Of a stretch of DNA of 64,000 nt, positions 32,338 through 49,398 are shown one piece after another. Origin of the DNA: Podarcis pityusensis (lineage: Eukaryota); NCBI GenBank assembly GCA_964106645.2, contig OZ067038.1; one strand, given 5' to 3'. Each line of letters opens with the position of its first letter. Position 1 is the first letter of the stretch. Under the pieces are notes generated by a model. That model did not search any database, was not told where the DNA came from, and saw nothing but the letters and a program-made list of their open reading frames with translations. The position numbers were made by a program, and so were the translations under genes.

Positions 32338-32415
32338 CACCTGGACTGAAGCCACGGAGACCCACACCTGAGCCTCCCGCTCCACCACCTAAAGAAGAAG
32401 TTGTTTTGAAAAAAG
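32338..32415 (+). CDS. TTN: C-terminal PEVK exon, 78 nt (APGLKPRRPTPEPPAPPPKEEVVLKK); equivalent of mammalian exon 219
   Basis: ttttaag| acceptor, |gtaatt donor; PKEEVVLK motif. Confidence 0.9.
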
Positions 32416-37574: not shown

Positions 37575-38180
37575 CAGTGGTGCCCCGCAAGACGAATGCC
37601 TCGCAAGACGGAAAACCCGCTAGACGAAAGGGTTTTCCGTTTTGGAGGTGCTTCGCAAAACGAATTTCCTATGTGCTTGCTTCGCAAGACGAAAATGTCT
37701 TGCGAGTTCCTGCGGGGTTTTTTTCCTTTTCCCCCCCTTTTCCCCAAGCCGCTAAACCGCTTATCAGCTGATGGCTAAGCCGCTTATCAGCTGATCTTTA
37801 AGCCGCTTAACAGCTGATGCTAAGCCGCTTATCAGCTGATCTTTAAGCCGCTTAACAGCTGATGCTAAGCCGCTTATCAGCTGATCTTTAAGCCGCTTAA
37901 CAGCTGATGGCTAAGCCGCTTATCAGCTGATCTTTAAGCCGCTTAACAGCTGATGCTAAGCCTCTTATCAGCTGATCTTTAAGCCGCTTAACAGCTGATG
38001 CTAAGCCGCTTATCAGCTGATCGTTAAGCCGCTTATCAGCTGATCTTTAAGCCGGCTAAGCCGCTAATACTGTAGCGCTAAGCTGCTAAACCTCTAATGG
38101 GCTTGCTTCGCAAGACGAAAAAACCCGCAAGACGAAGAGACTCGCAGAACGGATTCTTTTCGTCTTGCGAGGCACCACTG
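37575..38180. mobile_element. Tc1/pogo-type MITE with internal minisatellite
   Basis: TA|cagtggtgccccgcaagacgaa ... ttcgtcttgcgaggcaccactg|TA. Confidence 0.9.
37752..38053. repeat. 22-23-bp minisatellite (13 units, alternating ~45-bp dimer), each unit containing CAGCTG
   Basis: taagccgcttatcagctgatctt / taagccgcttaacagctgatgc repeated head-to-tail. Confidence 0.95.
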
Positions 38181-38837: not shown

Positions 38838-39641
38838 GTAAGTTAAATTTCAAAACTGTGTAGTGTGTGCTTGGGATAAAATTGGGATATGAAGGAATTC
38901 TATTGAGTAATATTAAGCCTTGTGCATTATTTTTGCTCTTATATGCTAGTCCTTTTACCTTACTCTATCTTCACTGACCTATTTAAGAAGATTGGTTTTC
39001 ACTTAAGTTGATTGTGTAATTAGTACTGAAATCATCTGAAGGTCTTTAGTGAAGAGCTGGTTTGACTAGAACTGGAACTCAGTATTTAATTGCCAGTTAG
39101 AAAATGATTCGGTCACAATATCACACATTGCTGTACTCCCAAAAGCTTCAGGTGGAAATATATCAACCTGTGCAAAGTTTATAAAATTGCCTCTGTAGAA
39201 GTGCTAACAACTATACCAATTCAGTTCACAAGACTGAAGATCTGTGGTCATCCATGACTCACTTTGGGTAATCTTATTTGAGGGCGGGGGGAGGAATATT
39301 TAGCAATAACATCAGATTCCAGCAGTTCTGAGCAAAATGAGGCCATAAAAAAAAAAAGAAGGAAGTAAAATGAGGCCATCAAAAATATGTTTGGGTTTCT
39401 GCATATATATATGGGGGTGTTTCCAAGTAAGCAAAATAATAATTAAAATAAAAATAAATTCTACTTTTCAATTTTAAAAATATATTCAAAGCAGATACAC
39501 TGCAACACTTTTGTTGTATATTTTTAATTAATAACATATGTGGCAATGCCCAGGCATTTTATTCTGTGTTATCCAGGTTTTCATGGCACTTTGGCTATGT
39601 GGTAGCCTTCTAATACAATTAGAAAGAAGAGATGGGCAACT

Positions 39642-39645
39642 TCTC

Positions 39646-39700
<55 letters not shown>
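39642..39700. repeat. (CT)n microsatellite
   Basis: Direct reading of the sequence. Confidence 0.95.
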
Positions 39701-45413: not shown

Positions 45414-46416
45414 GTAAGCAATGCTTTTAAATATTTCCCCACTTCTAAATGAGACTTATATTGCCTAAAATATGCAGATGGAAGAACATAAACCTTTGGA
45501 AAATCTTTGGAAGATCTGAGAAAGTGCTGTAGGGGTACTGAGAAAATAATTTCTATATCAACACAATTTAAATGGCTTGAATTGTAAATCGTGCAGTTAA
45601 GCAAAATATATAGAATGTAGTCATCCATGTTTCATATTTACACAACAGAAAATATATAATTCAAGGGGAGCAGTTTTAACGTTAGAAATCTGAAGATTGC
45701 TTTTGTAATGAAAAGCAATTGTAAGTAATATGTAAATAATATTTGATAAAAATATGTTGGTTGCAATTGTTAAAGCAATGTACCAGGTGCCTCTGGAAGT
45801 TAATAACTGCAATCAATTGGTTCATCGTAGCCATATATAGGGGTTTTTTTTTGTTAATGTTCCCATGTAAACAATTCAGAAAATCAATGTGCGTGTCTCA
45901 TTGATCTGGACAATGTGTGGTTCAAGGCCTGAGGTAGAAGTTTTGCAAAAGTTCAGTAGGTCGTAGTCATTGGTTGTGTGAGCAGATGGAAGGGTTGTGC
46001 ACAGTGCTCTGATCAACTTTAACTCTTTAGCAGCTGGTTGCAACACAGCCAACGCTGTTCAGGAGGGCCTCTGACCCTCCAAAGAGCTTTTTCATGGGGC
46101 TCAGTGGGCTGCAGTGGGGAGGGGAAAGATTGGTTGCACAAGCTCCCTTCCACTCACACAGTCATTAGATACAGAACAATGGGGTCCAAGTATTGTCAAC
46201 GTACATGCCAGAGAATGTGTTGTTCCGATATTTGTACTCCGAGGCAGGATGTTGAGAATCAGCTGCAGCCAGTACAATGTTTTGTCCCCAAAGGGGAATG
46301 AAAGGTTGCTACCATTGTGAATATCCAAATACCAGAAATACGGACCTGATAAAAGGAAGTGAAAGCTATTAAAAACAAGCGTTGTACAAACCTTTGCATT
46401 TGTTTGCTCTTGGAAG

Positions 46417-46543
46417 GACTGTGAAATTAAGGAGGAAGGCAAAAGGCACTGTCTTACACTCTACAACGTGCGCTTGGACCAGGCCGGTAGCGTAGATTTC
46501 CAAGCAGCCAATGCCAAATCATCTGCCAATCTTCGAGTAAAAC
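46417..46543 (+). CDS. TTN: Ig ~I95, second half (DCEIKEEGKRH...NLRVK)
   Basis: tggaag| acceptor, AAC|gtaagt donor. Confidence 0.94.
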
Positions 46544-47039
46544 GTAAGTGTCTTGCAAGTGTATCTGTAAGATCACTTGTCTTTTACATCAGTAACTGAG
46601 CTAAACTGAAACAAGTTGGGAGTCAGAGTGGGGCATGTGATCTGTTGTTAATGGGACAGTAAATGAGAAGGAGAGACAGTCGGGTGAGCTTAAGTTGAGG
46701 AGTAGTTATTTGATATAGTTGTGTCACTTATTCTTTCTTTATAAAAGCTTTTTATAAGTTAATTCTGATACTTTTAATTTAGTTAGTTAGTTAGTTTGTT
46801 TTTAGATCGTGGGATAGGTATTATATAAAGATTTTCAATTAGTTAATAAGAACAGGTTGTTAGACCACTGGAATCGCCCCTCCTTATTCCAGGATGATTG
46901 GCAAGGTAGCATAATGAGTTGTTACGAAATCTAAAATATTACAAATGGACTCTCTGCTGTGCTTGGCATTTGGGGTATAAGATCTGAGAGATAACACCAT
47001 GCTGACATTTGTGGAAAGTGCCAGTAGCTTGATGGACAG

Positions 47040-47384
47040 GAACACCCTACACAGTTGGTGGCCACTTGTCTCTCTATCCAATTGTAGACCTTGCTATTTT
47101 GGAAGGCGCATGCCTTATCTAGCAAGAGGCATGCAGGGCTTGGCAAAGGAGACAGATGCAACGTAGCTTTCTTGCTGATCTTTTCATTTAAAAGGAACAG
47201 GCTCCGCAAATAGGGAATCTCCAGTGACCAGCCCTCCCCCTGAAAACCCCAAGGGCCCAGATCTAGCCAGGGAATTTAAATAGCCTCTGTACATCATACT
47301 CCCTCTCTCTTGGGGAAAGGCACTATGGCCGTTAGTAAAAGGTGCAGGTGGCTAATCTGAAGATGTTTTCTTCGTTCCGTCAAG
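47040..47384 (+). promoter_or_regulatory. Putative internal (Cronos-type) titin promoter, 5' UTR and in-frame start codon at 47363
   Basis: E-boxes (47052, 47063, 47153), MEF2-like ctattttgga (47094), GATA ttatct (47115), TATA-like tttaaatag (47275), in-frame ATG; position equals the intron before the exon-240 equivalent. Confidence 0.72.
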
Positions 47385-47527
47385 CACGTGTAATTGGCCT
47401 GCTGAGGCCTCTGAAGGATGTAACTGTAACAGCTGGTGAAACGGCAAACTTTGAATGCGAACTCTCCTATGAGGGAATTGTAGTGGACTGGTTCTTGAAA
47501 GGACAGAAATTGGAGCCCAGTGACAAG
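47385..47527 (+). CDS. TTN: Ig ~I96 (I32), first half (PRVIGLLRPLKD...EPSDK); exon-240 equivalent
   Basis: tcaag| acceptor, AAG|gtatag donor. Confidence 0.95.
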
Positions 47528-47979
47528 GTATAGAAGACATTCTTTCTCTTCTCCCCTTTTTCCGTGTCAAACCCTATTTCTTTCCCTCTTTCTCTCCTAC
47601 CCCTCCCTTCTGTGAGACTGACAGTGCAATCCTATACATACTTATCTGGAAGTAAGCCCCACTGAGCTCAATGGGGCTTGCTTCCGAGTAGAGATCCATA
47701 GGATTGCACTGTAAGGCGCTATTCTAAAATATCATTCAGAAAAATCAGTTCCTTCCACATGGTGGGAGATAAAAATTTCAAAGTGAGAGGTGAAAGGGGT
47801 TGGGGAGGTTTTGTATCAGTGCTAACATAAAGGGATATGTAATATTTTTATATTAGTGGGGAAGTTTATGATTGTTTGCATCTCCTGATTCTTTCCCTTC
47901 TCTGAATGTAGAGCTGGCATCCAGTTCTGCATATAAGGGGATTAAGGAGATTGAAATTCCATTTCAGGCATTTGAGCAG

Positions 47980-48095
47980 GCTTCCAGATAACTTTCTCGG
48001 TAGATCTGCTCGCAGAGCATTTCTCACCAGCTATTTTTAACCCTTCATCAAGTGTGCCGTTAGCGCTGAGATGTGAACAGCCTGGAATGCAGTTC
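47980..48095. promoter_or_regulatory. Candidate striated-muscle enhancer (GATA, MEF2, NKX2-5, TEAD motifs)
   Basis: AGATAA 47986, CTATTTTTAA 48031, TCAAGTG 48048, TGGAATG 48083. Confidence 0.55.
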
Positions 48096-49018
48096 ATTCA
48101 ATATTTAAAATGTTTTAGCAGCAAGCCATATAGTAGTATAAGTAATCACATGCAGTAGTTGCATTCAGTGAAATATTATTTGGTGCATGCTTTTTTAGAT
48201 CCTCTGTTTAAGTCGTTAGAGTGTCTGTTAATGATAGGCTTACGCAGAGAATATTTGCAAAGGAAAACAGACCTATACCTGCTAATATAAGGCCTAGTTA
48301 GTGCAAGTTTGAAATTACCATAGCCAATTCAGCCTAATTAAAACATTAAATTTAAACTAGCATAGCGAGATTTAACTAAATGGATAGATTAATCCTTACT
48401 GTTCCCATGAAAAATATTTTAATGGTGAAGCATTATTAGATGCATCATAAATATTTCAACTTTTATTTCAACTTTCATATTAATAGTTAGCAAGATTTTA
48501 TGTTTTGCTTCTGATTAACCCATCTACATCAGTTTAAATGGGCCTATGATAACACAAACAATGGTGTTTAGGGCACTCCTACCCCAGTCCAGTAAGGGAC
48601 TATAATCCATGCAGAACCAGGTCTCTCCTGACTTCTTCCCAGCTGGACAGGGGAGCTATGATGAAAAGCTTCTTATACACATACTGTAGTTCTCCTTTTT
48701 GATTGATTTGGATTATATCAACCCTTTGAAGAAGTTTACAGTTCCAGCAATCAGCTGGTGGATTCAGTCTGCCGACTCCCACAAAACTCTAGAGGCCTTT
48801 GGGGCTTGGCGACTGATGCAGTACGAAGAGCTGAAACTGCGACAAGAAATCAGAGAGGCCCCAATACATGCCCAGAAGTGCATGGGTGTATAACTGGGAG
48901 TCTTTGTTTACCAGCCTGTTTAGACAGACATGTGCTAACACAAATGTTTGATATAAGGTCGCAACGTGTTTTCATACCAAATCTATTCTCCTGAACGTTC
49001 CTTTCTTCTTTTTTTAAG

Positions 49019-49142
49019 ATCGTGCCCCGTGCTGAAGGCAGAGTTCACACCCTTGTTCTAAGAGATGTGAAACTAACAGATGCTGGAGAAGTCAAACTGA
49101 CTGCAAAGGATTTCAGAACTCAAGCAAATCTTTTTGTAAAAG
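49019..49142 (+). CDS. TTN: Ig ~I96, second half (IVPRAEGRVH...NLFVK)
   Basis: ttttaag| acceptor, |gtaggc donor. Confidence 0.95.
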
Positions 49143-49398
49143 GTAGGCTTCCTAAAGTAACAATTTATTCCCTTAGTAATATGCTAGAGACTACTGATCT
49201 GTGTTAGGCAAACTGCATGATTGGGCCGATCCTTTTCTGCAGTACTTTTTACACATAAAATGCTGAAAAGATTTCTGGCCATAACTCAGTCTTTCAAAAA
49301 GATCAGAATGATAGCTAGCTTTTAAATCTCTTGGGAAGAAAAAATGATGCATGTAGCACCAACATGATTTGTGGGGGTTTTTCCCTCCCTGTCCTCAG

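Follow-up and report, generated by a model that had tools for sequence, protein, structure and literature searches.

A probable squamate orthologue of the titin Cronos unit in the lizard Podarcis pityusensis

Introduction

Does the titin gene of a lizard carry a second, internal start of transcription and translation, of the kind known as Cronos in other vertebrates? The question was raised by a sequence-only reading of a 64,000-nucleotide stretch of DNA from Podarcis pityusensis (GenBank assembly GCA_964106645.2, contig OZ067038.1), which is called the window below and whose first letter is position 1. That reading pointed to an in-frame ATG at the end of a titin intron, with promoter-like motifs upstream, and proposed that a Cronos-type unit is conserved in a squamate; its author knew of no reptile description. 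The literature searched agrees on this last point, since it describes Cronos only in zebrafish, mouse and human, and pairs it with no reptile, bird or shark.

In zebrafish, Cronos arises from ttna (ttn.2), where the promoter lies in the intron before exon 116, the initiator Met is 7 codons before the exon and the transcription start site (TSS) is 110 bp upstream (Zou et al. 2015, PMC4720518). In mouse Ttn (before exon 223) and human TTN (before exon 240), the Cronos Met lies 12 codons and the TSS 256-257 bp upstream, and the promoter has been validated in all three species (PMC4720518). A 2026 paper likewise presents Cronos as a zebrafish discovery with conservation in mouse and human, and another paper finds that its regulation in human cardiomyocytes is separate from the intron-1 enhancer. 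Cronos titin explains why TTN truncations differ in severity before and after its start point, and it is needed for normal sarcomeres.

The titin gene and its exon borders

The titin gene lies on the + strand of the window. Short exons of the PEVK type extend to ~36 kb and are followed by I-set Ig exons from 36.6 to ~55 kb and then by fn3/Ig exons; the Pfam matches of the window exons are to I-set and fn3, and titin chains from the PDB are among the top matches. The exons that surround the proposed start are as follows.

46417-46543, + strand: titin exon "239", second half of an Ig domain; RNA-contig joint 46543>47385 (GT..AG)
47385-47527, + strand: titin exon "240", first half of an I-set Ig domain (Pfam I-set, E 5.8e-6); RNA-contig joints
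49019-49142, + strand: titin exon "241", second half of the Ig domain of exon 240; joint 47527>49019 in 4/4 RNA runs

The borders of these three exons are fixed by spliced RNA contigs of four related species (one assembled run each, aligned to 46340-49189), in which both joints were found in all four runs. Exon 240 ends at a GT donor at 47528, its homologues also carry PF07679, and it is the first exon common to full-length and Cronos titin. A rough tally of the open reading frame (ORF) list indicates that it follows the last PEVK/first distal Ig exon by 15 exons and precedes the first fn3 exon by 12. The sequence-only reading had numbered the exon at 47385 as exon 240; the tally agrees with this assignment, and the absolute number depends on the anchor exon at 32338 that the reading itself had chosen. 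Sequence comparison identifies the intron that ends at 47384 as the one directly before the orthologue of human exon 240, mouse exon 223 and zebrafish ttna exon 116. The orthology is based on the 7-codon spacing of the homologous ORFs, a mammal-like subgroup with 12-codon spacing, the mapping of a zebrafish morpholino target (see below) and the exon tally.

Several other features of the gene were observed in passing. In RNA run X1, two variant contigs of exon 240 cover window positions 47407-47527 with 2 and 5 differences from the window; allelic variation, a mixture of individuals or a duplication in that species could account for them. Weak matches to one short segment of the upstream profile (see below) recur every ~45 nt across 37766-38045, a periodicity indicative of a tandem repeat in the intron that follows the first distal Ig exon. 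A (CT)n microsatellite at 39640-39700, translating as LSLSLS..., lies within the intron that precedes the Ig exon at 39.8 kb.

A proposed start codon within the acceptor region

The proposed start codon has the context aagATG, with the A of the ATG at 47363, an A at -3 (47360) and a T at +4. It lies 22 nt (7 codons) upstream of exon 240 and is in frame through the acceptor, so that the intronic extension contains an in-frame initiator codon with no stop before the exon. From 47363 the frame reads MFSSFRQ, then an Ala codon formed across the junction by g (47384) and CA, followed by RVIGLLRPLK, and stays open as far as the donor at 47528; it is continuous through exons 240 and 241. Direct reading of the letters bore out the sequence-only reading on the codon, its context and its frame, and also on the claim that these bases double as pyrimidine tract and coding sequence. 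The latter holds for 47366-47384, since the sequence downstream of the ATG, ttttcttcgttccgtcaag, consists of pyrimidine tract and acceptor AG and also supplies codons 2-7.

47363-47384, + strand: Cronos-type start codon, codons 2-7 (MFSSFRQ) and first base of the junction codon; the ATG is conserved, and the segment overlaps the acceptor of intron 239

The Ala at the junction is specific to the Cronos reading; since exon 239 ends in C (46543), full-length titin has C|CA (Pro) at this place. The nearest upstream in-frame stop ends at 47338, and the ATG at 47363 is therefore the first in-frame ATG of the ORF that spans 47339-47530.

An in-frame intronic ATG in a single genome is unremarkable: simple codon arithmetic suggests that about one in four intron ends should carry one before the first upstream stop. 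The signal is in the conservation.

Conservation of the start codon across vertebrates

When the 56-residue ORF was used as the query of a word search, 66 short ORFs were retrieved and aligned; most are gene calls on genomic contigs, an origin that favours sequences with an in-frame start. Exactly half of these homologues (33/66) start at -7 codons from exon 240, and M occupies the -7 position in 38/66 and one of the positions -5 to -8, reached by whole-codon shifts, in 46/66. Nine of the 66 have a distinct mammal-like exon signature and start at -12 (eight) or -11 (one). A further 12, which form one divergent fish-like group, start at neither position.

The same search was applied to control exon 238, likewise a half-Ig exon and located two exons upstream of exon 240. 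It showed no preferred start: at most 5 of 61 ORF starts fell at any one upstream offset, and 13/61 homologues started inside the exon.

Since GTG and TTG starts also appear as M in the output of gene callers, the DNA letters were read as well. A true ATG is present at -22 in 10 of the 11 loci read in this way (window included); the eleventh, L008, has ATT at -22 and an in-frame ATG at -19. The codon at -12 is GTG both in the window (47348-47350) and in its closest relative L001 (L001:3001-3003), where it is printed as M. The shark Callorhinchus milii is represented by a UniRef model, P0048, that begins MFSPTSK and is spliced to the next exon. Thus, the position of the in-frame ATG is fixed, with whole-codon shifts only, across shark, teleost-like, frog-like and amniote-like sequences, where such labels for the comparison loci are given by sequence resemblance only. 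The sequence-only reading had named loss of the ATG in other sauropsids as evidence that would count against it; the ORF homologues and the DNA loci both show the codon to be conserved.

Two groups of ORFs deserve separate mention. The 12 ORFs without M near -7 (P0047, P0053, P0057, P0060, P0064, P0056, P0059, P0062, P0065, P0066, P0050 and P0054) all have the ARS[IV] exon type; they possibly represent a second fish titin paralogue, and the Cronos start may not have been retained in that gene copy. In the mammal-like ORF P0005, M occupies both -12 and -7; at the level of these translations, this suggests that the start codon was shifted stepwise in the mammalian line.

Relation to the zebrafish start codon tested by morpholino

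The sequence of the internal-ATG morpholino used against zebrafish Cronos is printed in the methods of PMC4720518. Its reverse complement matches the teleost-like locus L006 at 2460-2484 with 3 mismatches (200 shuffles gave 0 matches), and between the end of the match and the exon lie 38 nt, in agreement with that paper. Since the morpholino target maps to the aligned teleost-like leader, the window ATG aligns with the experimentally tested Cronos ATG. A fish ORF found on ~200 contigs (P0069) was considered as the zebrafish sequence and rejected, as the morpholino target has no match in it.

The intron before the Cronos exon is ~700 nt long in the teleost-like loci L005 (1823-2501) and L006 (1748-2501), as against ~50-250 nt for neighbouring introns, and this length fits the housing of a promoter.

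Conserved sequence upstream of the start codon

Apart from the exons, the window aligns with its closest relative L001 only at 46886-47597 (82%) and 47820-48201 (78%); the first of these values is as high as in exons. Intron 238 and the 5' part of intron 239 gave no alignment between the two. The region of ~340 nt upstream of the start is conserved out to teleost-like loci, amid neighbouring intron DNA that is unalignable even between close relatives.

The depth of this conservation was measured with a profile built from four squamate-like loci over -360 to -23, and thus without the ATG or the exon, and searched with nhmmer. The matches, which range from E 5e-65 (L004) to 5e-7 (L006) and so extend across vertebrates, fall at the corresponding place in each locus.

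L004, amniote-like: E 5e-65
L007, frog-like (its exon resembles a Staurois protein): E 1e-14
L009, fish-like: E 7e-8
L005, teleost-like: E 6e-8
L006, teleost-like: E 5e-7

Only positions 47025-47150 of the upstream element are conserved out to the teleost-like loci, and the content shared there consists of CCAAT, TATTTT, CCxTATxTAG and TTGG(C). The third of these is a reverse GATA site in tetrapods and CArG-like in fish. The features upstream of the start codon are listed here.

47025-47165, + strand: distal conserved module, defined by profile matches and invariant columns
47078: CCAAT, distal module
47093: A/T-rich CArG/MEF2-like GCTATTTTGG, distal module
47112-47121: GATA/CArG-like CCTTATCTAG, distal module
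47115, reverse strand: GATA site TTATCT, found by regex scan
47140: TTGGC, distal module
47153: E-box CAGATG, distal module
47166-47324, + strand: proximal part of the upstream conserved element, within the 82% block shared with L001
47275-47283, + strand: TATA-like TTTAAATAG, found by regex scan in the proximal part
47300-47311, + strand: pyrimidine run tccctctctctt, found by regex scan in the proximal part
47325-47360, + strand: upstream ATG (uATG) with an 11-codon upstream ORF (uORF), A at -3 and G at +4; invariant ATG column in a 7-locus alignment
47352-47356, + strand: CTAAT, candidate branch point of intron 239, with the branch A ~29 nt before the acceptor

Most of the promoter motifs named in the sequence-only reading were recovered by the regex scan, namely the TATA-like box at 47275, the pyrimidine run at 47300-47311 and the GATA site, the last on the reverse strand. 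The TATA-like box is kept only in the close relatives L001 and L003, and the pyrimidine run is also not conserved beyond two close relatives. The reading's count of three E-boxes has to be corrected: there are five CANNTG motifs in 47040-47362 (at 47052, 47063, 47079, 47153 and 47345), a mild excess, as five or more are found in 4.6% of equal-sized tiles of the window. Its MEF2-like site at 47093, GCTATTTTGG, has two mismatches to the MEF2 consensus and one to the CArG box, and is more aptly called an A/T-rich element.

The uATG at 47325 is also present in L011, and its uORF has 5 codons in L004, L005 and L011. In the window this uORF uses a different frame from that of the main ATG, and only 2 nt separate the end of its stop codon from 47363. 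The context of the uATG is stronger than that of the main ATG. The CTAAT at 47352 is likely to be the branch point of intron 239 by its agreement with the yUnAy consensus, and CTAAT or CTAAC occupies the branch-point position in tetrapod-like and teleost-like loci.

A second conserved element in intron 240

The other non-exonic block of conservation lies downstream of exon 240 and has its own set of muscle-type motifs.

47880-48045 (approx.), + strand: second conserved non-coding element, defined by profile matches and alignment
47929: CArG-like GCATATAAGG
47953: GAAATTCC
47986: GATA motif AGATAA
48031: perfect MEF2 consensus CTATTTTTAA

A profile of this element matches L008 (E 1.5e-44), L004 (8e-42), L007 (1e-12), L005 (2e-6) and L006 (3e-5), in every case at the corresponding position of the intron. 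It is a candidate downstream muscle enhancer. Conserved elements on both flanks of exon 240 fit published data from human fetal muscle and heart, in which this exon is overlain by promoter chromatin marks (PMC4720518).

Intron 240 also contains a dispersed repeat at 47575-47764, which matches dozens of unrelated RNA contigs from all four runs at 85-90% before each continues into unlike sequence. An Rfam miRNA-like match at 47642-47694 (E 0.058, sub-threshold) falls inside this repeat and was dismissed as being at chance level.

Transcripts and the predicted position of the transcription start

The RNA contigs of the four related species represent only the full-length 239>240>241 form, with none over 47005-47384; such contigs drop short dead-end tips and rare forms, so that an alternative 5' end of 60-250 nt could escape them. 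Among sequencing runs recorded as RNA, none contains this stretch. A search with the shark protein P0048 for spliced ORFs of the Cronos type returned mainly genomic ORFs, together with fragments from shark and frog (Staurois) that have the full-length splice pattern, and no new Cronos-type transcript.

The known systems predict two different start sites. By homology with zebrafish, the lizard TSS would be at ~47290-47320, a range that falls 15-35 nt after the TATA-like box and agrees with the proposal of the sequence-only reading. The zebrafish TSS itself (PMC4720518) is ~30 nt upstream of the conserved uATG. By homology with mammals, the TSS would be at ~47130, just 3' of the deeply conserved module. 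The choice matters for translation: from a TSS well upstream, the strong uATG and its uORF would limit initiation at 47363, and general scanning rules suggest that a TSS within ~15 nt of the uATG would let scanning ribosomes mostly bypass it.

The mammalian variant is the alternative that survives best, as a possible but clearly less favoured version of a real promoter. It would place the TSS at ~47130-47160 (~256 nt before the exon), just 3' of the CCAAT/A-T-rich module, leave the TATA-like sequence at 47275 outside the core promoter, and produce a leader of ~230 nt with several uATGs. The mouse and human TSSs at 256-257 bp upstream (PMC4720518) agree with this distance, the teleost-deep conservation is confined to 47025-47150 and ends there, and the TATA-like box is restricted to one lineage. 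However, the zebrafish TSS is 110 bp upstream (PMC4720518) and it is the zebrafish-type start codon at -7 that the lizard shares; in addition, a leader that begins at 47130 would include the ATGs at 47131, 47156 and 47325.

Explanations without a squamate Cronos protein

The conserved DNA might instead serve full-length titin, with the two elements acting as enhancers or splicing regulators, or as an antisense promoter, with the ATG retained for a reason other than translation and with no squamate Cronos protein. We regard this as improbable. It accommodates the lack of any Cronos-type transcript among the assembled RNA contigs of the related species and the P0048 search matches, and the CArG-like, GATA and MEF2 content suits a general muscle enhancer as well as a promoter. 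It leaves unexplained, however, why the ATG is fixed and frame-preserving from shark to amniote-like sequences at a place outside both the branch-point and the acceptor consensus. The neighbouring constitutive exon 238 has no preferred start and aligns for no more than ~40 nt upstream, and the promoter in this region has been validated in three vertebrates (PMC4720518).

That this is an ordinary intron end, in which nothing is functional and the ATG and promoter-like motifs occur by chance, is very unlikely indeed: E-boxes, GATA sites and other short motifs occur frequently, as do in-frame ATGs at intron ends, but the ATG position and the ~340 nt of flanking non-coding DNA are conserved amid unalignable intron, control exon 238 has no such pattern, and the teleost-like, frog-like and shark sequences argue against a comparison of near-identical loci.

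A model for the lizard Cronos unit

The preferred reading is that the locus is the squamate orthologue of the titin Cronos unit, with an internal promoter in the intron before the equivalent of human exon 240; judged from sequence, this is probable with good confidence. The proposal of a squamate-conserved unit made in the sequence-only reading is thereby supported, by comparison of the ATG position, the flanking elements and the morpholino target.

In this model, a transcript initiated within intron 239 would continue into exon 240 without splicing, and translation would start at the ATG at 47363, adding MFSSFRQ plus the Ala junction codon to the titin sequence. The 22 nt from the ATG to the exon would act as pyrimidine tract and acceptor during splicing of the full-length pre-mRNA and as coding sequence in the Cronos mRNA. 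This dual use would follow from the placement of the start codon between branch point and acceptor, which would make these 22 nt a splice signal for one transcript and codons for the other. The promoter would be driven by the CCAAT / A-T-rich / GATA-CArG-like / TTGGC module at 47025-47165, with a probable contribution from the CArG-like / GATA / MEF2 element of intron 240. The short conserved uORF at 47325 would probably be part of the 5' leader, where it may damp translation.

A broader version of the model is that Cronos is an ancient module of jawed vertebrates with a fixed architecture. From shark to lizard the ATG would have kept its place 22 nt ahead of the exon, and only in mammals would it have shifted to -12; the leader would have kept its uORF; and the two flanking elements common to teleost-like and squamate-like loci would together form a minimal promoter and enhancer. 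On balance we lean towards this version, though with less assurance than towards orthology itself. A fixed architecture of this kind (ATG position, uORF and two elements) is not described in the literature searched.

The lizard Cronos unit is the expected orthologue of a known internal promoter, and the added value of the analysis is a map of the constrained bases, which marks the ATG position, the uORF and two small motif-rich elements. With a reptile orthologue and with shark, frog-like and other fish sequences, the Cronos unit becomes a general vertebrate feature. The constrained sites provide a short list of targets for mutation in studies of how Cronos is activated independently of the main TTN promoter. 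For genome annotation, there is a case for a second titin transcript and a protein start at 47363.

Comparison with known systems

The lizard unit most resembles that of zebrafish ttna. Both use an orthologous half-Ig exon with the initiator Met at -7 codons (22 nt), inside the acceptor region, and the teleost-like loci share the upstream module and the intron-240 element with the lizard. The differences are that the lizard has the TATA-like TTTAAATAG, which is absent from the teleost-like loci, and that its uORF has 11 codons as compared to 5 in the teleost-like loci. Cronos has been studied by experiment in zebrafish, whereas the lizard unit is known here from its sequence.

The mouse and human genes share with the lizard the same exon and an in-frame intronic Met, associated in mammals with a known intronic TSS. 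In this comparison, which uses ORF translations and the figures of PMC4720518, the mammalian Met is at -12 with the TSS at 256-257 bp, whereas the lizard has GTG at -12 (47348) and ATG at -7.

A more distant parallel is provided by dystrophin. The short isoforms Dp260, Dp140, Dp116 and Dp71 arise from intronic promoters that produce C-terminal isoforms with a short unique N-terminus, and each promoter has a separate first exon of its own, joined to the rest by splicing. The likeness to Cronos is in the overall plan, a promoter within an intron of a very large gene that yields a C-terminal isoform with a short unique N-terminus. The difference is in the first exon, which in Cronos is a 5' extension of a constitutive exon, and it is for this reason that its coding bases double as a splice acceptor.
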